This document shows, one piece after another, positions 1 to 13,701 of a DNA stretch of 64,000 nucleotides (positions are counted from its first letter, which is position 1; every line of letters begins with the position of its first letter). The DNA is from Phallusia mammillata (Eukaryota): the NCBI GenBank assembly GCA_965637545.1, contig OZ281497.1, positions 14,260,001 through 14,324,000 on the forward strand. Direction: 5' to 3'. The notes under the pieces are model-generated. The model saw only the letters and a list, made by a program, of their open reading frames with translations, was not told where the DNA came from and did no database searches. Made by a program: the position numbers and the translations under genes.

Positions 1-3000
1 AGCCTCACTTCCATAACTGTATTGTGATTTTGAAGTGAGCAAAACTGCATTGGATACCTCTGCTGGCTGGTTGCAAAATATTCTGTTACATTCCACAAGT
101 TTGGGCGTCCAAAAACCTAAACCACAATAATTACCAAAGGCCAGGTCATAGATCCAAGTACAATGAATATTACCTCTCGAACAAGTGATGACTTGAACTT
201 GCTTAGCTGCAGTTATGTTGTAACCTTTCCTGCAAATGACTTGCACTCTTGTAAGAATTGGATACATGTATGATGGACTTGAATATGAAATACTCATTAG
301 TTTCATCCTGTACATAGCAGATTTGTTCAAAAGTAAAAATTTGTGTTGTTAAAATTGTTATGCTGTTGTTAAAACTTTTATTACCTTGTTAATTTGGGCA
401 ATGTACAAGTGTATGTACATTTTCTAATGCTTGTACAAAACTGTGCCACATTCTTTTTCACCCAGCACCAAGGTTGGGGAGCATTTGAACCAGGATTTCT
501 GCAATGGTTGTGGTCTGGGAAGTTTGTGTCGCCATTATAATATTTCCTCCAGTTCATACAGTAACCTTTTTCAGTCCAATTGGTATAACCTAAAAAGTAA
601 GGCTGTAGAAAATGCTTTTCTGGCAAATGTTTGCAGGCATTGGAGCATTATTTTTTACTAGGATGCCAAATGTTTTTTTCAGGTTTTATTCATGCTAACT
701 TTAGTAGAAAAAAATTGCCATTCCAGAAAACCAGAACATGTTAAAACCTATAACTGCTATTTTAGGGTTATCACACTGGGTTTTATTATTATTTTCTGTA
801 ATAATCTAATGTTAAAAAGTCTTCTGTTTTAAATGATAGTGATTTTGAAACCTTTTTTAAACAGATGATCATTTATCTTCCACAGTTTTTCAGATGACTA
901 CCAAAAAAGAAGACAGAATCAAATAAAGCATAAAAACAGTAACCAAGACACAATAATGTACATTGCATAATCTTAATTTGGAAAGCTTGACCCTTACATA
1001 TAACAAAATCCGCTATAATTGTTACTAAGGTTTCAGAAATACATCAAAAATCTTTAATAATTAGCAATTCTATTCCTTCAAGTCATCTTTTTTGAACCAC
1101 TTTGAAAATCACTTACTTATTAAAACTTGTTTTACTCGGAAAATGATACAAAATAAATACCATAGTAATTCGTCCCAGTCCCATAATAGCACTCTCCAGC
1201 TGATTGACATGTAAATGGCAGTGGTTCTTCTCCAGTGCTTACTTCCCATTCATTTGTGGCAGAATTTAATACCACAACTGCTGGCGTTGGACACCTTTGA
1301 ATTTTTTTTAAATAATTTTTTTTAGAACTTGAAACTTTACAAAAAACTAAATCATTATTAAAGGACTTACTTGGAAACAAGGCAGTCTTGCCATGGTGCA
1401 TCAGGTTTTAAGGTCATACACCAAGCATGGTCCTCTGATTTTTTTCTTAATATTTCATTGGGAGGTCCAGGAGGTTTTCTACATTTGTTACCACTCAAAT
1501 CATACTCAGTGAAATTTTCTGGTTTAAAAGGGTGTCGGTGAGGTCTCTAAAATCACATATTACACAAAAAGACATATTTATACTTTCTACTATCACTACA
1601 TATTTACCATTGAAATCCATGGCTGACATCTTATACCATCCCTGGTCCATGATCTGAAAATTTATTTGCCTGTCGTATAACTACAAAAACCAACCTATTG
1701 CAACAAGTTATTAAAAGCTTGAAAATATGTGAAATGCATTTTAAAAGTTGTTTTGTGCAGACATATTACCATTAACCACAAGTACCTTGTCCCACGATAG
1801 TCTCTCATTTTGACCCATGGCAATGCACAGTCAATCATTTCCGATACACCTACAGGATTTCTTTTCGCAGTTACAGCTTCCCATTTATCAGAATATCCCT
1901 TTTGCTAAACATACACAAAATTAGAAAAAAGAGTTAATAAAGAAGGCACAGGTTTCTTTTAGGTTACTTACTCTCAGGACCAAATTATATGCAATTCCAC
2001 TTTCTGATGTAAATGAATCGAGGGACAAGTAATATTCTTTGTCTGAAGCAAGTCGGATAAAATCTCCCACAACTTCTTCTTTTCCGTGAAGTTGTGCTAC
2101 AGGTTCATATACCCATGACTGATACTTTAACCGAACAACTTCACAAGGTTTTAGCATAACAGAATGTTTTACTCCCTCGTCAGCACTGTCAAGCATTGAA
2201 TCAAGACACATGTCCAAGTTGCGATGTTTAATTTGGGTTAAATATCCTGCAATCCAGATATTTTACACATTAAGTTAAGCTTGTAGGTTAGTTCAGTTCT
2301 AAATTTAAAACTTTTGTTGTGTTGCAAAATAGTCTCAAAAACTCTATGAAGTATTGAATAGAAAACAGCAGTGCAAAGTAAGAACTCAAAAGATTAAGAA
2401 GGTGTCAGGTTTGAATGTACCGTATATACTCACCGATAGGTCGCACTATTAGTTTTGTGTTAAAAAAGTGTAATTTAGAGTTGACTCGCACATAAGTCGC
2501 ACTGAAAATCTAGAGATTTAAAACGCCCTTTTCTCTAGCTTTTTTGCATATATATCTTCCTATTTTGTTTTTTTGTAGCGTTTAATATAATCAAAATATG
2601 TTTATCGACACCTGTGAGCTGTAATAAGTGCATGTACGCAAGCGCCGGCCATACGATTTCATGAATAACCAACTCGCTACAAAACTGTATGTCATTGCCA
2701 GTACATTCGGACCCCTAACCCTGTTTAGCCCAAAACTTTCAATTTTGTTCCGACTAGGTGGTGATTTGCACTTATGTCCAGCGGATAGGTCGCACCTATA
2801 TATTTTTTTTAAATATAAGGAAAAAAGTTGCGTCCTATGCGCGAGTATATACGGTAATCATATGATTTCTCACTCTGATTTAATAAGTTTTGTAAAAGAT
2901 AAAAAACTAATTAAAGTACTTTTTTAACTGGGGTGCATTAAAACTTTATTTTATCAATAACTGCCTTCTAGACACACATGGCAACCCGAAGAAATCAGGT

Positions 3001-6000
3001 TTAGGGTTCTAGAATTGCTAGAGTCAAAGCTGTACAACGGACCATTGGGTTGGAGTCAGTATCGTAGTAAGAATAGCATTACCAGAAAAAAGATTATTTC
3101 ACACTTATAAATTAAGACAGTAAAATTGTTTTAAAAACAACATGTAGAATTTAACCACTTTTAAAACTAGAATAGTGGTTTTCCTATATATTGCCAGTTT
3201 ATATATACTACATCATATTTAACGATGTATCACATATACCATTTACTATATTTATAATGTATATATATGGGGCACCTAAATTTCATTGGGTCCCTATCTT
3301 TTTCCTGGCACTTTATGTCATAATTGTTTCTGCAAGCATAATCTAATGGGTCCCCACACCTGTGCATAAACAGTAGAAATAGGGCACAATCATTGTTAAA
3401 CTGGAATAATGGATTTCCTATATATTCCATTTTACAGAAACGGTGCCATATTTACGCACCATTCATTATAATTCTAAGGGATATATATTTGATGGATACA
3501 TTCAGTATGGTACCAATACTTTTGTGGCCTGTTATAGCATATTTGTTTTTGCAAGCAAAAACCAATGGGTCCCCACACACACATATATTTTGAATTTGTA
3601 ACAGGATGAATGGCGCATGCATATGCTAGGTAAGAATTTGAATTGCACAGATGACATTTGTCGTATTAAAGAAATATTTATAAACTTTTGTTTTGTAACA
3701 GTCACAGCCCTTTGTTTGTTGAATTATGATTTTTAATCAGCACATAGCGTACCCTGGCGCCGTTAAGTTTCTACATACCAACAATACGATTGCTTAGCTG
3801 GGCTTTTTATGTCCAAAACCTGTTCTAAAACAGTTATATTAACGCTTTCAGTTTGAGAAGTCACGTTACACAGGTGTAACAAATCGTACTGCGTTGTCGC
3901 TCTGCGTTTTGAAACACCTATAAGTTGACCTACATTAACGTTTACAACGCAATATAACTAACATCGTAACATCTTAATTCCAACCAGTGAGAAAATGGTC
4001 AAGTGACAACTGCGTTCATGCGTGAAGCAGAGGCATTTTTTATGCGCCACTATCGTCAATCACTCCCATTGCGTCAGCTGTGCACTGAGCGAGCACAAAT
4101 TTGAAAAAAGACAGCATTTAAAAACATATTTTTACTATTACTGGGCTGATTGCACTGAAATTTTTACCAGGCAACAAAGAGCACCCTATCCACAGCTGTG
4201 TAAAATTTCAGCACGTTAAGTCTTGTATTTCTGACCTCATTAACATGTGAACAAACAAACAAATATTTGGGGGTAAAGGGGTGAAAATGGATATATACAA
4301 CTTCAAGTTACAAAATACTTTAAAATACGCTGCAATGTACCAATCAAAAAGTATGAAACTCCAGAATCATCTACTTTAGCAAGTATAGCCGTTTTAAAAA
4401 AATTACGTTTTGGGGGGCTGTGGGTGAACCGAGGGATCAAACGGGGTCAAAATTCACATGGACCATCTTTAGACCAATATCTTTAATGTGTGTAAATTTG
4501 AAAAAGTTTGAACCATTCTTTCTTGACCAAAACGTGGGAACAAATCTGCGTTAAAAATTTCACGTTTTGGGGGGCTGTAGGTGAACCGAGGGATCAAACG
4601 GGGTCAAAATTCACATGGACAATCTTTAGACCAATATCTTTAATGTGTGTAAATTTGAAAAAGTTTAAACCATTCTTTCTTGACCAAAACGTGGGAACAA
4701 ATCTGCGTTAAAAATTTCATGTTTTGGGGGGCTGTGGGTGAACCGAGGGATCAAACGGGGTCAAAATTCACATGGACCATCTTTAGACCAATATCTGTAA
4801 TGTGTGTAAATTTGAAAAAGTTTCAACCATTCTTTCTTGTCCAAACCGTGGGAACAAATCCACGTTAGACGGAAAAAAAGAAAAAATATATGTAGACAAA
4901 AACAATATGTGTCCCCTTCAGGGAAGGGGATCCATAATTAACATTAAAATAATGTAGGCACAAGGTGCAAACAAAACTATTGATGACGGTGATCACTATT
5001 GTGTAAAACACAAATTGGAAAAAGTGTGCATACACAACCTTTCTGACTTTTAGGACAATCCTACATACATAAACAAATAAACGTTAAGTACGTACCTGAC
5101 AGCCACCAAAAGAAAATCGTGTTTTCGACTTCGCAGGGGACAAACACAACTTTAATGTGTACAGATTTATTGCCACTCATCTCTTGTTCAACCTCTGGTT
5201 TTGCACATTTTGTCAAATCAAATGGGCTTTGAAAAACAAACGAGCGTCCAGCAGAACCTCTACTTTCACCTGACTTAGTAAAATCTGTCTCCGCTTGCTC
5301 CGTGAGCTCAGACGACTGTGGCATAAACTGCCATGTGATGTTAGATACACCTACAGTGGGTGTCATACATGCTGAGCTGAGACCTATAATATATTGCAAT
5401 TCAAATCCCTTTAAAACAGAACATTACAAAAATTACCCATGAAGTAATTCTCTGATCTACAGACAATCATATCATATTTACACATAGTAATGATAAAAGG
5501 TTCCTAGAAATTAATAAAACATTTCATGTCAAAAAAGTTAAGAATAAAACTGCACAAATGGGCATACACTTAAGCATATACTTGAAAAAAACATTACATA
5601 CTTGCAGCAATTTAATGGTGAAAACAAGGGCCCAAATAGATGTAAAAAGTGACATGCTTTATTTTTCAAACGTTTAGGCAAATACTCATGCCATCATCAG
5701 TGATCTGCCAAAACGTTTGAAAAATAAAGCATGTCGCTTTTTACGTCTATTTGGGCCGTTATTTTCACCATTAAATTGCTGCAAGTATGTATCGTATTTT
5801 ACGGACCATAAGGCGCAATTTAAATCCTTTTTTTCCTCATAAATTGATCGTGCGCCTTATAAGCCGCCTAATGTATGGATCAAGTAGTGCTTTATTGCCT
5901 ACACTCCAGTACCGATACTATTATTATATAAATAAACCACCGTCTTACACAATAAACTACGGTAAAAGCAACTAGCAACTGTGATATTCACTAGACTCAT

Positions 6001-9000
6001 TTTTTTTGCTCATTGTACTATTGAGACTTGCTTACATTTATTAAGTAACAAGTAAACTTTTATAACCCATACTCCTTAAAATATGTTGCGTTCTATAGCC
6101 CGGTGCGCCTTATGTATGAACAAAAAACTAATCAAAGCAATTTATTGATAGTGCGCTTTATAATTGGGTGCGCTTTATGGTCCGTAAAATACGGTAATGT
6201 TTTTTCATGTATATGCTTATGTTACCATTAAACTTATGAACAGATTCGTATATAGTGCAGCAATTTGTTTTGTTCAGTATTTAACTCTGATAAACAATTA
6301 TACAAAAGTATGCCAAATAAATACCTTTACAACCACAGCGAAGATAAAATCTACTTTGAATATGCAGAAGATTAAAACTTTCCGACCCAACATCAGTTTC
6401 GTGTGGTAACCATCTCCATCTCTGTGAAGGTTTGCTTGAATCACAATCTTCAGCAATCACATACATATGCATTTGGTATGATGACAAACATAGTCCACTT
6501 GCCACATTCATTAACTGTCGATTTCCAAATTTTATCCACCTAAGATAAAAAAATTACCCTTTTACTTTGGTGTGTTGTTAGCAGGCCTGGGGAGTCGGTT
6601 GTCTGTACCTTCGACACCAATTGCTAGAAATTGCATAGGTCTGACTCCGACTTTTGCTTGTTGCTAACAATAGAAAATTATCCTATTCAATCATGCTTGA
6701 TTTAAATGTCTTTTTTGCATAATGTTTAAAACATATGTATTTAATGCTCAACTAAACTCCGACTCACCAGAACCAGTGGTAAGGTACATATGTTTGTAAA
6801 TGCCCACAGAGTTTGCTGCTTTAAATTTTTCACCACATCTTTTATGACATGTTATCACAATCACAAGTAGTCATACCTTTGTGATGAAAGTTCATCGTCA
6901 CAAGGTGTCATATGAATGAGGTTAGAAGAGAGTGAGACAGCATGAGAAAGACAGTTTCCACAGCCTGTAAGAAATTTATATGCACCAGGTGGTGTTTCTG
7001 CCGACATTTTTGAAAATGGGGTGATTCCTGACCCAGGTAACCAGGTGGTAAATAACGAACTTCTCAGGTCAGATATGTACACCTTTGAAAATAAACAAAA
7101 AAAAACATACAAAATTTCAGTAAATAGCATAAAATCTTGGTTATTATTTCATTTTTCTCAACATAAAACTTTAGAAAATGTGTTTCAAATATTTGTTTTA
7201 CCACATATAAGATATAAGAGAATTTATAAACCTAGAAACTCGCTCAAACATTATCAACTTTACAAACACTTTATGTAAATAAATGGCTTTAAAACATTAG
7301 ACTTATGAACAGACCCATGTACAGTGGTCGGTGATGCAACTTTGAAACATACATAAGAACTTCAAGAACCTTTGTTAAAGCATCGAAAGTAAGTTTGTGA
7401 AGGGGACCAGACTCTCTGCTGTCAAACTTCCATCCCGAAAAAATATAATCTTCTGATTCTATCCAATACTGAGACAATTTGCCAAGTGTTCGCTTGCAAG
7501 GAAACAATGCAACAGGATCACCATGTTTGGGAATTCGTGCTGATAAACTAATACACAGCTTGTAACCCATGTTGACGATTGCTTGTGATGACCACCAGAA
7601 AAACCTCTGATTCTTATCACTGAAATCACATCTATCAATCTGAAGTACATGAGTTCTTTTTATAAATCTTGCAACCAAGCAAAAATACTGATCATCTGCC
7701 GAGCGTTGAAGTGAACGAATGAGAAACTGGTGTTGCAGATCAATTTTAGGAAAAACCCTGGCAAAGAAAAATATTTTTATTATTTATTTGTTAAAGTTGA
7801 CAGTTAAAGTTGCTTTAAAACCTAAAACTAACACTCGAAACATATTCTAAACCGTGTTTTATTTTTGAAATTCTAAATCGACTGTGAATAAGATGACTTA
7901 AAAGCATTTTAGTATCTAATGTCTTGTCAAGTAAAACAATAAAATAAATAATACAATCATTGTCCAAAAACATTCTAGATGTTCTGCACTGGAATATTTA
8001 CTGCAATACTAGACTTACAGGACGTACAAACCTGTCTCCAAACCCACTTTCTGGCATGACATCCAAACAATCCGTTACATTGCAAGTAGTTGGGACTCTT
8101 TCACTTCCAGCATAACACCACACGCCTTTCAGATCAAGATTTGGGTTGCGACAGTGATTGTCACCTTCTGGAGGGTCAAGCCCACCAGCTTCCAACCTTT
8201 TTGGTGGTTTGTGTTCTTTTGTATCAGCAGCAACAGACCATTTTTCACATGGAAGTCCATTGCTGGCTGTACGAACTGCCCCAAAAAATGTACTTCCCAA
8301 ACCAGTTACACAACTTGGTTTTTCTACACTTGTGCTGGTCCCCTGAAGACTCCATGGGTGCATTCCACCAACCAACTGACGGTCGTAAGTATAACGCAGA
8401 GTATGTGTATCACTGTCTGGTTGTGGATGCTCCAAGTCCTCAAACATACCTTGATATAAAAACCATGCCAATTGTCCATTTATAAAAATGTCTGTTTTGC
8501 ATTTTTATACATTTTAAGAACACAACAGTTCCTATAGATTAGGTTTTATTTCATAGATAGTATTTAGTTACATATCCTGAGTACAGTATATACCATCAAA
8601 CAAATTTATAAGCCATGCAACATGTTTAACTGTTTTAGTTGCGACTATCTTTTATGCGACGTTAATGTAAATTTTGCTCTTAGTGGTGATGCTACTCTTC
8701 TGGTCTATACCTTGTGCATCAAAAATGCATGCATAAAAAGCATAACATTATGCACTATACATCTAACAGTTAGCGTTCTAGTGATGTTATAAAGTTCATA
8801 CCAATGTAGGACTTCTCAGAATGTCTTTGTAAAAGCAACACACGATTCAGACTCTGCCTGTTTTTGACAGAAGCCAGGGTCCAGTTGTTGGCTGCACAAA
8901 ATGATTGAGCTTCTATGTATGTTTTGGGGTCTGAGAATGCCTAAAATTATAACTTTTTTCAACAAACATGGATCATACACAGTTTAGATAGTCACATACA

Positions 9001-12000
9001 AAAAAGTTTTTTCATTTTCTCATTTAAATTATTTCACTGTAAATACAGTATGTTGTAACATTTTCAAACTATCAACACATGTCAGATGGAATAAGAATTT
9101 AAACAGATCAGCAAACCTGTGTGTTTAAAGAGTCATGGTATATATAAATACACTAAAGTTCCCCATCATTACCCAGTGTTTGTAAAGCATTCATAATAAA
9201 ATTTGCCTTCAGACCGTTTCCAGGGGGTATTTACCTTATAGCAGGTAAAATCGCCTCGATAGAAAAAAGACTGCATAAAATCCCAACCAGGGGGGCAAAA
9301 TATCGGACAGGGTTGAGTGTTGCAAGGGACGGCTTCATAATCAGAGCCATCACAATCACTTCTTCCATACTTCGCGCAAGCCCTTAATACTTTGATGGTA
9401 CCAGTCCCGCAGGTTCGTGAACATTTTGGTGGTGCAACAACTTCCACCCCTAAAATAATATATAACACTGAGGTGGTCCAATACTGAGAGCAAAAAAGGC
9501 TACAATACAGTTAGTTACATAGAGTTGGGGACAAAGATGACTTTTTCTTTTAAAGGAGTAAGTTACCTTGGTTCTAATCAATCCAATGCAGGGGTGTGTG
9601 ACCATTAACACTGATATGTTGAATATAATTAACATAGTTAGACTGCAACTTTTCATTACACAAGGTAAAACTTTACTTGGGTGAAAATTTGCTTTCATCC
9701 ACTACTGAAACTATTGTAATGGTGTTTCAATAGCCATCCTTTTCTGTGTGTTGTAATTCAATCACTGCTTAATTGAGTGCAAATGCAAATAGATATGATA
9801 CAGGACATGGATCATATTTTAATGCAGAGTTACGTTTGCTGACCAGCACGTTATTGATGCATTTCTATTTAGGGCTGTGGCTAAGAAAAACATTTTTTAT
9901 GCAAATCTATTCAAAGACTGCATACATACCATTTTTGCAGGCCACACAAAACTGTGTTAGGCAACATATAAAATGTTTAGGCACCTGGTTTATGACCTTT
10001 GAAAAAAATATTTACAAGATTCACTCATCATCTAAATTCTGATAAAACAGTTTTTTATCAAAATTATGAAACCATCTTTTTTGCCGTTTTTTAATTACCT
10101 CTTTTTGCACAGATGTTAAGCCTGTCAGTGTTAAGCAAATGAAAATCAGTGGAACTGCCACGAGTTTCTCTCATCTCAAGATTTAAGCTAGGTCCACTAT
10201 TACTTATTGCAAGATATTTATGGTTTGGTTTTTCCTTGGGTAAAACATGAAGAAATCTCAATCGAACTCTTAGGGAACGATATTCACCTGCAATAAGTTA
10301 TTTGCAATTAAGTAAATTGTTAAGAAGATACCAAAAAGCGTGCATTATCCTAAAATGATGCAATAAACCACTTGGCAACATTCATTATTCTTTTGATGAA
10401 ACATGCATGTCTTAAAGCAGTTCGTGGATCGAAAAAGTTTGTTTTCTTAGTGTGACAACCCTATGACCAGGGGTATATTAAGGCTAAGGCCTTTCTAGTG
10501 GTTTACTTTAGCTAAAAATAGTTAAATCAGATTTATTTAATCAGTATGACCTTTTAGATAAAACTTTGTGCCATAAATACTTTATTCGCATTTCACATAT
10601 TTATGAAACAAAAATACTGTGTTGATGGCGGCTATTGTAGTATGGCATGATTTTTTGGAACAAGTGGAAAAGTTTGCTAATCACTATGTTAAACTCTGCA
10701 TATTTTTTGTTTTACAGAAATCTCTAGAATTACAAAAGTAGATCAACTTACAGTACCAATTTTGATGTGCATCATCAATGTCACAAGGTTTAAAAATGAC
10801 AATAACCTCTGTCAAATTAGGACCAGTTCGATTTACAGCTAGACATTGCTTTGTAGCTATATGCTCAAGGTTAAAATCAAGCCTCCATTGCCACCAAAAG
10901 TTTTTTAAATCAGGGCTTTTGTGTCCAGGACAGCGTCGAAAAGCCCTTGTGAAAAAAAGTGAATTCCAAGGTCGGTTACGTAATATAAAGTTAACATACA
11001 AATGAGTGATATAATTTGCTCAAAACTCATCAAATGAACAACTTTTTATATATTGAACACAAACAACAAAGTAAAGTATCAGTTTTTTTTGATATCGTCT
11101 CTTAGACTTAGACATTATACCCCATCTTGGCAACATTTAAAAGCAGACTGTTTATACATTTTTTATCCTTACTTTTTTCTGACTATATCATACCAACTCA
11201 CTATGCATTCCCTTGCAATAACTCAGGGAAACAACAAATGTTCGCATTTGCAGCAAAGACAAAAATACCACAGTTGTCAAGTAGTATAGACATCTACAAC
11301 CTGTTTCATACCAAGGTTTAGGTCCCTCAGCTGTTATGTTGGCATCTAAACATTTGTGTGAATTCCAATTCATTAAAACTCGTAAGCCATCCCATCGCAG
11401 TCCAAGGATACAGTTGTCCTCATCTTTTTTATTACGACAATTGTAATATCCACTGCATTCCTGTTCAAAACATATTGTTGCAATAGCAGTAATTAAACAC
11501 TGTAACACTGATATTGTATGATAGTTTTAGTCATTATGAGGTACTGTACTATCAAGGCAAATGCTGGGATCATTATGTTCAAACATTAATGTTGCATGTT
11601 CTACAAACTGTATCCAATTTAAACATAATTTGATAATTTTACAGATTTTGGTGTGCTATGGATACTAGGGTAACTTGTCGACAAGTTATGAGGAAAATAA
11701 AGTAATATATTTTTGTGGCTAGAAGTACAACCGCTTTATCGGTAAACAAAACTGATAACTTAGTTGCAGGCAGGCCCATAAAAGTTTAAACCTAATTTAT
11801 ATCTTGGAGTGCATTTGACCATGTATAATATTACTTCAAAGAATATACTTCTTTGCTTTGTAAATTAAAAAGAGGATACTTTTGTTGCAATTTGTAAACA
11901 TCACTGGAATGATTCCGTGCCAGTTTGAAACAACAATTCTTTTCATTTAAATAACAACAAAAGTTATATATAACTTGCAAACAAACCCTAAAATGGTAAT

Positions 12001-13379
12001 TTATATTTAAAATATGAACAGTACCTTTGACTCATCAACACACTGTCCATCACCACATGAAAATTGCTTTGCAGCACAAGTATGGATGGTTCCCCCAGAT
12101 CTACCACTTGGACTAGATGCGGCTCTTCCACCTGGTTTCAGGTAGATTTCCGAATCATTAGCATTTGTTCTTCCCTGAGGAACACTATATAACAAACAAA
12201 TATGGACATATCACCTAATTGCATAGGGAGGGTGAATCACAAACCATAACCTATCACTTAATCAAAAAATCGTCCGATTTTATATGAGATGGGCGATAGA
12301 GCAGAATGTGGATTTCTATATGAATGTTGCATTATAAAATGCTTTTCTTCAAACATAGTATAACTATTTGAATTTGCATCTGAGGTATATTTAAAAATTA
12401 AACCAAACCATTTAAACCTTACTTGGGACAAGAAAGGATTATAAAAAACACACACAATGCTACCATTTTAGTGGCCATATGCATTTAAGTCGTAAAATTA
12501 CAGATGATTGTGTATAGTTAGAAAACGATTCTCCACATTAGCTATAACCAAAATAGGCTAAGACAGTGGTCGGCAACCGTTGGTCCGCAACCCGGTGCTG
12601 GTTTGCGAGGAGTTTGTTACCGGGCTGTATACTTTTTCAAGTTAAATGCTAACATTTTGCCCATGTATCCCAAGGAAAATCAACTAATTTAAGTGTTTGT
12701 TTTTTGTTTGTTCTTGGTAATTTTTACCTTTTTTTACCTGAACCTTTGACAAAACTAATCGAGTTGCCCTGGCCTAGACCTATGGCACTACACATGCATT
12801 TTTACTTGTATTTTTTTACCTTGTCTCTCTGCAGGGATAGGATGCACAATCCTGCATGTCATATTTAATGCTGTTACAGCCAATGTCTATGCATGATCTG
12901 GTGCGCAGTCTTTTTCCACCCTTACATTCTCTGCTACATTTGCTCCACTTACTCCATGGGCCCCACCTCATAAACAAAAACTCATGTTACAATCTTTCCA
13001 AAACATACGGATTAATACTAAGAATAGCTCCATATGCCTACTATTCTTAAAACATATTAGTATGGACATTGTGGTGCTGTTAAAATTACCTTCTTGCAGG
13101 ATTGCACAATTCACATGTTTGACGACATTGATCAGTCACGAATTGCCAATCACAATGTCCCTGCTCTTTATGGATTGAGCAAAAGTCTCGGTTTAAAGCT
13201 GAATCACTACATGAAAATCCATGGGCAGTTTCATATACGTCCTGACCTTTGCACGGGTAAAGTTCTGCAGATTATTTTCACCTTTGTTTATACCTTTACC
13301 AAAATCATGAACAAAAATGCAAATACTCACCCAAAAAAACGGCAGCAAAGAACATGAAAAAACGTAGGTGGTAGAACAT
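1..13379 (-). CDS. Secreted multidomain mosaic protein, 3'-partial: signal peptide, ShKT, TSP1, LDLa, ricin/CysR, TSP1, split C-type lectin, 3 kringles, 3 further ricin trefoils, CCP/sushi
   Basis: Hand-spliced minus-strand exons, all GT-AG with consistent phases: 13379-13331, 13264-13090, 12966-12820, 12184-12025, 11460-11312, 10945-10752, 10287-10099, 9449-9235, 8940-8802, 8449-8032, 7757-7370, 7082-6877, 6539-6325, 5383-5096, 2246-1972, 1904-1786, 1653-1608, 1546-1371, 1294-1161, 589-385, 307-<1 (4194 nt, 1398 codons). Motifs: MFYHLRFFMFFAAVFL (signal); CSDSALNRDFCSIHKEQGHCDWQFVTDQCRQTCELC (ShKT); WGPWSKWSKCSRECKGGKRLRTRSC (TSP1); CAAKQFSCGDGQCVDESKECSGYYNCRNKKDEDNC (LDLa); NHCRNP..VWC and YRGTRSWTRDGIRCQPW (kringles); CL..C..QRW (ricin); YPILTRVQVICRKGY (CCP). 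Some individual donors, e.g. 7370, are uncertain. Confidence 0.88.
2420..2854. mobile_element. Non-autonomous Tc1/mariner-superfamily MITE (CCGTAT-type TIR, Tc2/Kanga-like)
   Basis: Terminal inverted repeats CCGTATATACTC and GAGTATATACGG, flanked by TA at 2418-2419 and 2855-2856. Internal repeats of ATA(A/G)GTCGCAC. No coding capacity. Lies in an intron of the mosaic gene. Confidence 0.85.
3230..3590. repeat. Dispersed repeat with internally repeated AATGGGTCCCCACAC motif; related inverted copy at ~52118-52160
   Basis: (A)ATGGGTCCCCACAC occurs at ~3346 and ~3565, with a variant at ~3287. TTTGTTTTTGCAAGCAAAAACCAATGGGTCCCCACAC is close to the reverse complement of GTGTGGGGACCCATTAGTTTTTGTTTACAAAAACAA at ~52118. 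Boundaries are approximate. Confidence 0.6.
4090..4938 (+). mobile_element. Helentron/HINE-like non-autonomous element with three 157-bp tandem core repeats and a 3' hairpin
   Basis: Three copies of a unit starting GTTTTGGGGGGCTGT at 4407, 4564 and 4721 (period 157), then an A-rich tract, then hairpin TCCCCTTC-AGG-GAAGGGGA (4912-4930) followed by TCCATAAT. An upstream (CAAA)n microsatellite lies at ~4250. The 5' boundary is approximate. Confidence 0.7.
5595..5791. repeat. Foldback element: 86-bp inverted arms (5 mismatches) with a 25-bp spacer
   Basis: TACATACTTGCAGC...AAACGTTTAGGCA is mirrored by TGCCAAAACGTTT...GCTGCAAGTATGTA. A half-copy of the same family is at ~44270-44365. Confidence 0.9.
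5792..6194. mobile_element. Tc1/mariner-type MITE (CCGTATTTTACGGACCATAA TIR)
   Basis: Left end TCGTATTTTACGGACCATAAGGCGCA and right end TGCGCTTTATGGTCCGTAAAATACGG, with TA on both flanks (5790-5791, 6195-6196). Confidence 0.85.
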
Positions 13380-13701
13380 CTTACAGCATTTTAACACTTG
13401 GAAAAGAACGCTATTTTGGCAATTCAATGCATTACGGTTCAATCGTTCTGCAGACATCTAAACAGTCGCGCTATTTACAATTTTCTGCATGACCGAGCAC
13501 GAAGTAAAGTCGTTCATGCATTACGTTGTGCAACATGTACTTTTTTTACAAGAAAGCATTTGTCATGTAAGTCGCAAAAACTATACAACTAAATAAAATG
13601 ATTTTGGTTGAAATGTAGACTGGTTTCGTTGGCGAATCACAATTTACGTAATCTGTGGTGCGTTGCCCCCTAGTGTTGACTAATAAATCGTATCTTTTTC
13701 C

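Follow-up and report, generated by a model that had tools for sequence, protein, structure and literature searches.

What does the mosaic of cysteine-rich modules at the start of this window (the whole stretch of Phallusia mammillata DNA analysed, 64,000 nucleotides) encode, and does its product end where the window does? The sequence-only reading took it for a secreted protein of at least 1,398 residues in 21 exons, with no transmembrane domain appearing before the window ends. In our curated model, 22 minus-strand exons splice in frame from an ATG at 13379 to an exon crossing the window start (Table 1). The spliced model of 4,264 nt is stop-free, with 4,122 nt (1,374 aa) inside the window; the in-frame splicing was confirmed, and a micro-exon adds one to the exon count. 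From N- to C-terminus, the window encodes a signal peptide, ShK, TSP1, LDLa, ricin, TSP1, a partial C-type lectin and a kringle, followed by three ricins, a kringle, a short Cys piece, a kringle and two sushi modules.

Table 1. Exons of the curated gene model, with their module content and the evidence for each; L-numbers denote sequences compared in the analysis.
Exon	Position	Strand	Content	Evidence
1	13331..13379	-	Start codon and signal peptide MFYHLRFFMFFAAVFLG	Phase 1 donor TGG/GTGAGT, in frame with exon 2
2	13090..13246	-	ShK-like six-Cys module	Pfam ShK; splice sites
3	12820..12966	-	Thrombospondin type 1 (TSP1) repeat 1 (WGPWSKWSKCS...)	Pfam TSP_1
4	12025..12184	-	Ser/Gly-rich linker, then LDL-receptor class A (LDLa) Cys 1-3	Pfam Ldl_recept_a
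5	11312..11460	-	LDLa Cys 4-6, then ricin 1 start	Collinear L010 match
6	10752..10945	-	Ricin 1 middle (FWWQW motif)	Pfam Ricin_B_lectin; L010 match; self-search
7	10099..10287	-	Ricin 1 last part	40-48% identity in L005, L010, L043
8	9235..9449	-	TSP1 repeat 2 and CTLD start (CPPGW...CYK hairpin)	Pfam TSP_1; conserved in L005, L008, L010, L043
9	8802..8940	-	CTLD helices a1, a2 up to 'YIG' (WIGL position)	Pfam Lectin_C; 64% identical to L005
10	8002..8449	-	CTLD strand b2 region (LRYTYDRQLVGGMHPW) fused straight to kringle 1	Pfam Kringle
11	7370..7757	-	Ricin 2, entire beta-trefoil in a single exon	Conserved in L008, L010, L043
12	6877..7082	-	Ricin 3 first part	Conserved in L008, L010, L043; phases fit
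13	6325..6539	-	Ricin 3 last part and linker	Pfam Ricin_B_lectin; conserved in three loci
14	5096..5383	-	Linker and ricin 4 start (FFWW motif)	Conserved in L008, L010, L043; donor 5096 joined to 2246 in RNA contig; no Pfam match
15	1972..2246	-	Ricin 4	Pfam Ricin_B_lectin; RNA joint 2245/5095, CT..AC ends on plus strand
16	1786..1904	-	Ricin 4 end and kringle 2 start (C...DYRGT)	Conserved in L010, L043; donor at same codon position in L010
17	1608..1653	-	46-nt micro-exon SWTRDGIRCQPWISM; kringle 2 second Cys and Trp	Conserved in L010
18	1371..1546	-	Kringle 2 C half (RPHRHPF...CRKPP...WC...C)	~60% identity to L010
19	1161..1327	-	Short conserved piece CPTPAVVVLNSATNEWEVSTGEEPLPFTCQ and kringle 3 start	53% identical to L010; RNA contigs span 1159-1278, joining 1161 to 589
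20	385..589	-	Kringle 3 C half and first Cys of CCP 1	45% identity to L010; RNA joint 587/1159 in two runs
21	174..247	-	CCP 1 middle	Donor fixed by RNA joint 114/172
22	1..116, +142 nt past window start	-	CCP 1 end, CCP 2, second CTLD start (CPPGWFSFNR)	Open frame passes position 1 into extension L002; Pfam Sushi; RNA joint

The RNA check of splicing that had been proposed bears the model out where it applies: introns 117-173, 590-1160 and 2247-5095 are matched to the base by spliced RNA contigs with minus-strand GT..AG joints, in a comparison that covered window positions 1-6000 at a depth of 3-5. The micro-exon is the sole phase-compatible candidate with conservation, its counterpart at L010:11121-11166 reading SWTRSGIRCQPWKSQ. 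Two boundaries leave a choice: the donor of exon 10 lies at 8002 or at 8032, and the acceptor of exon 19 at 1327, for an intron of 43 nt, or at 1294, for one of 76 nt. Exons 1-4 fall outside the RNA-supported joints and the cross-species matches. An alternative in-frame ATG lies 26 codons upstream of the exon 1 start, at 13457.

Scanned exon by exon, every module of the sequence-only reading obtained at least weak Pfam support. Kringle 1 (47.9 bits with Pfam Kringle) exceeds its cut-off, as do TSP_1 repeats 1 and 2 (22.7 and 22.8 bits, cut-off 21.6). Scores under the cut-offs result mostly from the division of domains over exons. The ShK module (E=0.011, 16.8 bits, under cut-off) has a complete six-Cys spacing, C-x10-C-x8-C-x8-C-x3-C-x2-C. 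The sub-cut-off Ldl_recept_a match of exon 4 (E=8e-4) covers the N half only (profile positions 2-20), and joining exon 4 to exon 5 regains the six-Cys LDLa spacing. Also under cut-off are ricin 2 on exon 11 (Ricin_B_lectin E=4.9e-6, CysR_MRC2_N E=1e-4), Lectin_C on exon 9 (E=0.005) and Sushi on exon 22 (E=3.5e-3). Further Ricin_B_lectin matches were obtained for exons 6 (E=0.024), 13 (E=1.6e-4, profile positions 85-126) and 15 (E=0.003). The Pfam Kringle matches of the C halves of kringle 2 (E=4.5e-3) and kringle 3 (E=8e-4) are again under cut-off; for kringle 2, the L010 orthologue gives E=7.7e-6. The ricin count is corroborated by a self-search, which places one unit ahead of the second TSP1 repeat and another three in the stretch from kringle 1 to kringle 2.

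Conservation provides a further view of the model. Fifteen open frames, along with the micro-exon, which was mapped using the spliced model, are collinear with the 15-kb contig L010 from a different organism (amino-acid identity 33-60%), and these 16 segments keep exons 5-20 in order within ~12 kb. Collinearity is also found for exons 8-14 in L008, 7-10 in L005 and 7-18 in L043, and the exon order is kept in contigs of three other organisms, presumably ascidians. The lectin-kringle exon (exon 10) is single copy in the P. mammillata genome and has homologues over its whole length in P0007 (47% identity), P0010 (41%) and Ciona P0137 (30%). Since the locus combines a single copy with conservation in presumably ascidian contigs, its earlier description as a lineage-specific, exon-shuffled protein is fair. 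In an exhaustive search of 1.84 billion representatives, the same-layout relatives of this exon are unnamed exon-sized fragments and a single RefSeq model, from Ciona intestinalis, that bears the name 'uncharacterized protein'; we found no characterised protein with the same module combination, in agreement with its not having been recognised before.

These observations bear on two rival views of the window. That domain shuffling left behind a decaying or non-functional locus here, whose spliced contigs reflect background transcription, seems to us very improbable: the RNA depth is indeed very low, several modules score under Pfam cut-offs, and both kringle 2 and the CTLD depart from the typical form, but the frame runs uninterrupted for >4.2 kb over 22 exons (~14.6 kb overall in the model), splicing is exact, and an amino-acid conservation of 30-60%, with cysteines and exon boundaries kept, extends to at least three other organisms. 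The annotation of Ciona raises the other view. In C. intestinalis, XP_078495436.1 comprises TSP1, part of a CTLD and a kringle; TSP1 and LDLa occur in the gene next to it upstream, ricin and kringle in the one downstream. RefSeq divides this region into a number of short genes, all 'uncharacterized'. A fusion in our model of two or more neighbouring genes, for example ShK-TSP1-LDLa-ricin and TSP1-lectin-kringle-ricin, would agree with the RefSeq split at about that point and with exon 1-13 junctions that are without RNA support here. We nevertheless regard such a fusion as distinctly improbable, as the LDLa module is divided over exons 4 and 5, with exon 5 also opening ricin 1, while exon 8 contains both the second TSP1 repeat and the start of the CTLD, and exon 10 both CTLD sequence and kringle 1. 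Phases agree throughout, no stop, internal start or signal peptide interrupts the chain, and L010 holds exons 5-20 in order. The window exons are genuine and encode the first 1,374 residues of a sea-squirt protein that is so far uncharacterised.

Past the window edge, the same strand carries a second CTLD and ~28 CCPs, a count of Cys...Trp...Cys module ends that combined a pattern search with inspection by eye. A weak discoidin-like match and an exon of 954 aa follow. Pfam Sushi scores 35.5, 38.4, 29.2 and 42.4 bits (cut-off 20.7) in the 10-kb extensions L002, L003 and L004. The in-frame exon chain leaving the window reaches the 954-aa exon, for a total reading frame of ~14.6 kb in a model that was built with our own exon chainer and certainly contains some errors. 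Hydropathy analysis of this anchor exon predicts five spans (residues ~87-105, 305-331, 361-379, 887-905 and 920-943), which are conserved in P0151; the exon as a whole is conserved as P0151 and P0155-P0158. A convergent zinc-finger gene starts ~0.7-1 kb past its stop. The extension suggested earlier as a way to the C-terminus delivered more CCPs and predicted transmembrane segments and no serine protease, the scanned open frames of the 43-kb gene being without a Pfam match to the trypsin family. With exon 22 crossing position 1 and five hydrophobic segments in a downstream exon, the claim of a secreted protein without transmembrane domain is not supported; it was probably an artefact of the window ending there.

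Secretion could still be defended if the ShK-to-sushi mosaic were a stand-alone protein with its terminal exon somewhere within the sushi array, and the discoidin-like/five-pass part belonged to another gene downstream on that strand. In another assembly, the lectin-kringle exon (P0052) and the anchor exon (P0157) share a contig and a strand, with the head coming first and 132 kb separating the two, so that they could be conserved neighbours and not one gene. Short, separate Ciona RefSeq models of the region point the same way, and no RNA bridges head and anchor parts in the comparison, which covers window positions 1-6000 only. We consider two genes unlikely, as exon 22 already takes the chain past the window into the second CTLD, and the 24 kb from there to the anchor exon are full of same-strand sushi exons chaining in frame, among which no second signal peptide or start exon was seen. 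Moreover, the order and strand of head and anchor are kept in another organism, and the RefSeq Ciona model P0137 looks like a fragment because it appears to continue past the kringle into non-homologous sequence. That head, sushi array and anchor make up one gene is rather likely, and the whole protein, which would have ~4,860 residues and a five-pass membrane anchor, is probably not secreted.

The reading that we favour, and hold to be moderately likely, is that the exons in the window code for the N-terminal head of one cell-surface protein of that very large size, single-copy and conserved in ascidians. Beyond the edge, the chain would pass through two sushi modules, a second lectin-like domain, ~26 more sushi modules, a weak discoidin-like match beside the membrane and the five-span last exon, with head and anchor coming from one transcript. 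The sushi stalk would hold the lectin/kringle head far from the cell, the head would bind an extracellular glycan or protein ligand, and a signal would pass through a membrane anchor laid out as in polycystin-1 relatives. The glycan-recognition, immune or gamete-adhesion function proposed earlier is purely conjectural.

A PLAT-like beta-sandwich probably lies between spans 1 and 2 of the anchor exon, where it would sit on the cytoplasmic side. ESM features relate this exon to PLAT/GPS/polycystin clusters (0.89, 186 shared features), and Foldseek searches with two AlphaFold models, themselves of low confidence (pLDDT 39 and 58), place PLAT-bearing lipases and lipoxygenases on top (probability 0.97-1.0, E about 5e-3). 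Pfam PLAT gave no match to the 954-aa exon even at E=10, and a PDB sequence search with it found no PLAT; the assignment is weak.

The first lectin-like domain raises a question of its own. It has the N-terminal hairpin, helices a1/a2, WIGL and the W-x-W-x-D-G strand, and its N part from five species aligns with the genome's own CTLD profile (hhalign probability 89%, E=2e-6, template columns 4-99). After strand b2, a contiguous long-loop region, the C-terminal strands b3-b5 with their Cys pair and any EPN/QPD or WND motif are absent, and kringle 1 begins 13 residues past the conserved Trp of that strand. What had been listed as a C-type lectin module is just the N-terminal two thirds of a CTLD. 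The short conserved Cys-Trp-Cys piece of exon 19 may be the missing C-terminal strands. When it is appended, hhalign aligns its Cys, Trp and final Cys in register at an unchanged score (39.3 vs 39.4), and the HMM score is not raised. Alone, it ranks 105th of 348 windows in a scan that also missed the C half of the second CTLD, although this half looks canonical, and which is thus without power.

We find it doubtful that the locus represents an ascidian-wide receptor class with a lectin/kringle head, a sushi stalk, a five-pass PLAT-like anchor and a split first CTLD. In place of its long-loop region, this CTLD would carry a nested insert of ~700 residues that runs from a kringle through three ricins to a further kringle, and its last strands would come back in exon 19; the second CTLD may likewise be interrupted, by a ricin unit. 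To our knowledge, no CTLD acting as a scaffold for inserted domains has been described earlier, and the split CTLD, if true, would be the first known case.

How does this protein compare with known systems? With kringle proteins (plasminogen, HGF, apolipoprotein(a), ROR, Kremen, neurotrypsin) it shares its three kringles, the first being canonical, but it lacks their serine protease, kinase or WSC/CUB partner; a kringle serine protease of the plasminogen/HGF type was discarded, as no scanned open frame matched a trypsin family and the modelled chain ends in the five-span exon. Its kringles lie on either side of ricin trefoils and directly border a lectin-like domain; apart from the unnamed relatives and the Ciona model, we found no protein with this layout. 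As in long sushi-array proteins (complement receptors, CSMD, SVEP1, Ciona vCRL1), the ~28 CCPs form most of the ectodomain, and polymorphic membrane proteins with CCP modules, vCRL1 among them, are known from ascidians (PMC9265791). Unlike those arrays, it adds a lectin/kringle head and a five-span anchor, with CUB, EGF and VWA modules not seen. The mannose receptor family (MRC1, MRC2, PLA2R1, LY75) likewise combines ricin-type CysR beta-trefoils and C-type lectin-like domains in one membrane-protein chain. Membership was rejected, since the CysR-FNII-tandem CTLDs-single span layout is not found: no scanned exon matched fibronectin type II, there are four ricin units versus one and two atypical CTLDs versus eight to ten, kringles, TSP1, LDLa, ShK and sushi modules are added, and the anchor is multi-pass versus a single span.

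The polycystin-1 relatives (PKD1, PKDREJ, sea-urchin REJ proteins, Ciona s-Themis-A) offer the last comparison. The locus is not a canonical member of this family, because REJ and GPS were not found and Pfam PLAT is without a match. A six-frame Pfam search (E<=10) gave 21 REJ matches genome-wide and 0 in C4:14.23-14.274 Mb, none of the best 150 of 231 GPS candidates falls in the locus, and no GPS-like Cys/His-Leu-Thr pattern was seen by eye in the last 80 ectodomain residues. This genome does have canonical REJ and PLAT genes at other places. The stalk also differs, with sushi in place of PKD repeats, as does a long Ser/Thr-rich loop between spans 3 and 4. The resemblance is in the general plan: a very large mosaic ectodomain with lectin-type and LDLa modules, then a first span, a cytoplasmic PLAT/LH2-like sandwich (putative here) and further spans. 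The five predicted spans match the number reported for s-Themis-A (PMC9265791), and, should the doubtful receptor-class reading be true, the s-Themis precedent would by analogy make this protein a candidate gamete or self/non-self recognition receptor.

The minus-strand gene was rebuilt as a curated model of 22 exons totalling 4,264 nt and uninterrupted by any stop; the part inside the window (C4:14,260,001-14,324,000, a sequence containing no N) measures 4,122 nt and codes for 1,374 aa. On the minus strand, cysteine-rich stop-to-stop frames extend between roughly 13,400 and position 1. The splice sites of the model were curated by hand on the basis of phases, domain integrity and cross-species conservation; a first exon chain obtained with generic splice matrices had missed many exons and taken in a retroelement, and this curation and a retrained chainer were used instead. 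Pfam scans, all performed exon by exon, recovered each module named in the sequence-only reading: ShK (E=0.011, six-Cys spacing complete), two TSP_1 repeats (22.7 and 22.8 bits, each above cut-off), the N half of LDLa (E=8e-4), Ricin_B_lectin (E=5e-6) and CysR_MRC2_N (E=1e-4), Lectin_C (E=0.005), kringle 1 (47.9 bits), the C halves of kringles 2 and 3 (E=4.5e-3 and 8e-4, respectively) and Sushi (E=3.5e-3). Because exon boundaries cut through the domains, many of these scores do not reach the cut-off. A self-search placed one ricin unit upstream of the second TSP1 and the other three in the stretch separating kringle 1 from kringle 2, the same count and placement as previously proposed. As for the exon set of that reading, its modules and in-frame splicing hold, and one micro-exon (SWTRDGIRCQPWISM) had been missed. 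The following exon has a conserved acceptor in phase 0, which no other candidate fits, and the micro-exon is shared by L010, a contig of another, presumably ascidian, organism, where it reads SWTRSGIRCQPWKSQ. An alternative exon at 1669-1608, with a broken frame and no conservation, was rejected in its favor. The donor of exon 10 lies at 8002 or 8032 and the acceptor of exon 19 at 1327 or 1294. With acceptor 1327, exons 18 and 19 are separated by an intron of just 43 nt (1328-1370); with 1294, by one of 76 nt, and the exon then starts as it does in L010.

Eight small sequencing runs from the same organism contain 8-12% of the words of window positions 1-6000. Contigs built from four of them, at a low depth of 3-5, show GT..AG joints on the minus strand for three introns (117-173; 590-1160, in two runs; 2247-5095), identical to introns 21, 19 and 14 of the model. 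These joints imply that the runs include RNA and that splicing follows the prediction there. That two gene models were fused within the window, a possibility to be weighed against the collinear contigs described below, appears quite unlikely. Repeats within intron 14 account for the very high depth at 3,200-5,000. Dispersed repeats are densely packed in this intron (2247-5095), especially at 4397-4867, and it also holds a tandem array of three 157-bp copies; RNA-contig depth there reaches thousands and reflects repeat transcription, separate from the gene's own.

In an exhaustive representative search, exon 10 matched many kringle proteins and no full-length orthologue was found. The long top matches (P0001, P0002, P0005 and P0030) were discarded as orthologues, being multi-kringle proteins with kringle-only similarity. 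The lectin-like stretch that precedes the kringle is also covered only by P0007, P0010, P0024, P0034, P0052, P0107 and P0137. The last is XP_078495436.1, 'uncharacterized protein LOC144750510' of Ciona intestinalis, with the order TSP1, part of a C-type lectin-like domain (CTLD) and kringle; its upstream neighbor there bears TSP1 and LDLa and its downstream neighbor ricin and kringle modules. Moreover, four contigs of other, presumably ascidian, organisms are collinear with exons 7-10 (L005), 8-14 (L008), 5-20 (L010, 16 segments over ~12 kb) and 7-18 (L043), at 30-65% identity with cysteines and exon boundaries preserved. The gene is conserved in such contigs and partly in Ciona, and it is single copy in the host genome (240 Mb in 312 contigs). 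A decaying locus, to be set against this conservation and the stop-free model, is highly improbable. No gene name or function was found in the databases searched. Introns of the orthologue in L043 carry transposase-type open frames (2574-3569 and 9388-9651; FAM200/ZBED5-like, Transposase_1), which fit the far wider gene spacing in that contig. Elsewhere in the host genome, kringle exons give at least 87 matches, with a dense cluster at 19.13-19.22 Mb of contig C6 and an intronless open frame of 1,782 aa with at least 5 kringles at C8:6250100-6252898.

The main revision concerns the end of the protein, which had been described as secreted and devoid of an anchor. Exon 22 crosses position 1 and leaves the window, and in the 30 kb examined beyond it, sushi modules (CCPs) and then an exon with hydrophobic segments follow on the same strand, so that this description is probably an artefact of the window edge. 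A call of this kind made at a window edge requires the neighboring sequence before it is believed.

Features located beyond the window start, and the micro-exon inside the window
Feature	Position	Strand	Detail
Micro-exon	1653-1608	minus	46 nt; completes kringle 2
Remainder of CCP 2, then second CTLD	beyond window start	same as gene	
Ricin-like exons	beyond window start, after second CTLD begins	same as gene	
~26 more CCPs	beyond window start	same as gene	Sushi 29-42 bits in 3/3 extensions
Penelope-like retroelement, in sushi-array intron	L003:6739-9195 (10.8-13.3 kb beyond window start)	minus	open frame of 591 aa
Discoidin-like, weak match	beyond window start, after sushi array	same as gene	F5_F8_type_C_2, E=0.04
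954-aa exon	last in series beyond window start	same as gene	five hydrophobic segments
C2H2 zinc-finger gene, convergent	L004:73-1672 (about 28.3-29.9 kb beyond window start)	plus	conserved

The retrained chainer joined exon 22 in frame to the 954-aa exon in an approximate model of ~4,860 aa in total. The retroelement frame matches the reverse transcriptase RVT_1 (E=5e-5) and a GIY-YIG nuclease (E=5e-3). The zinc-finger gene, one finger of which is 92% identical to the corresponding place in L007, starts about 0.7-1 kb past the stop of the 954-aa exon and marks the 3' end of the gene. Each homologue of this last exon (P0151 and P0155-P0158) is a single, unnamed open frame located on a large ENA contig. 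In one of these assemblies, P0157 lies 132 kb downstream of the lectin-kringle exon P0052 on the same contig and strand, and the sequences flanking each of the two keep the order of the host gene model. The linkage between head and anchor is therefore conserved in a second organism, which does not in itself prove a single transcript. A stand-alone secreted protein, to which the head would belong if it were transcribed apart from the anchor, is considered rather improbable.

The lectin-like domain of the head raises a separate question. In a profile comparison with the host genome's own CTLDs, the N part of the first CTLD was matched with a probability of 89% (E=2e-6), which identifies it, at the level of sequence, as a CTLD. 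Its elements are the hairpin, the two helices, YIG in the WIGL position and LRYTYDRQLVGGMHPW for the W-x-W-x-D-G strand. At 13 residues further on, kringle 1 starts, which leaves the domain at that place without its long-loop region and its last three strands. Chiefly because the a1 cysteine is left unpaired, we considered that the domain may resume after kringle 2 through a piece of exon 19, CPTPAVVVLNSATNEWEVSTGEEPLPFTCQ, which is conserved in L010; we regard such a split as possible, albeit doubtful. In hhalign, the Cys, Trp and final Cys of this piece fall in register with the C-terminal end of a CTLD, with no gain in score, and appending it did not raise the score of an own-genome CTLD HMM. 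Tested alone, it ranked 105 among 348 windows of 34-40 residues in hhalign, a test that also fails to detect the C half of the second CTLD, which looks canonical, and hence has no power for C halves. Four CTLD pieces modelled as separate chains scored 0.03, evidence for neither side. The second CTLD (CPPGWFSFNR...YWLGIKD; L002, about 7190-10000, minus strand, 0-2.8 kb beyond the window start) is seemingly interrupted by ricin-like exons too, according to the approximate exon model; these are followed by two pieces that resemble the C-terminal end of a CTLD, NWCGCLYM...YTCN and NWCVAMIVKSRG...RFC...SVCEAK.

Predicted spans 1 and 2 of the 954-aa exon are separated by a beta-rich stretch of ~150 residues, for which evidence of a PLAT domain is mixed. 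On ESM features, the exon adjoins 'PLAT domain-containing' clusters that also hold GPS and polycystin domains (0.89, 186 shared features). AlphaFold models of its first 480 residues and of a 163-residue cut reached pLDDT of 39 and 58, respectively, and with either model Foldseek ranked pancreatic and lipoprotein lipases, lipoxygenases and Rab6IP1 first, as weak matches (probability 0.97-1.0, E about 5e-3); we take all of these to be PLAT-bearing. The Pfam PLAT profile left the exon unmatched at E<=10 while matching 63 other PLAT exons elsewhere in the genome. The Pfam scan of the whole exon gave no match, nor did PDB sequence and word searches with a 480-residue profile. At the gene locus, REJ had no match and GPS was absent among the matches listed. 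Given this mixed picture, we compare the anchor with those of polycystin-1 relatives in layout alone and do not assign the gene to that family.

To conclude, the gene most likely encodes a giant ligand-binding membrane receptor, with a lectin/kringle head, a sushi stalk and a polycystin-1-relative-like anchor, a new variant assembled from known modules in an uncharacterized protein. As to function, ligand and tissue, which we infer, the head would be carried on the sushi stalk and could bind an extracellular glycan or protein ligand, the receptor being held by a membrane anchor resembling that of polycystin-1 relatives. Sea squirts are the nearest invertebrate relatives of vertebrates and possess many lineage-specific surface proteins made by exon shuffling, some of which govern fertilization and tissue compatibility; polycystin-1 relatives include Ciona sperm self-recognition receptors, and knock-outs in Ciona are routine. 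If head and anchor form one protein, modules of carbohydrate-binding type, like those of mannose receptors, would be united with an anchor of this kind, a combination that to our knowledge has not been seen otherwise, and a concrete candidate would be available for testing in Ciona. Besides, whether the lectin domain is nested can be tested as a matter of protein architecture, and the importance of the gene would increase if this nesting or a recognition role were demonstrated. Finally, Ciona s-Themis-A is a five-span, LH2-bearing relative of polycystin-1 (PMC9265791), and the five-span layout with an LH2-type region in such relatives resembles the anchor described here.
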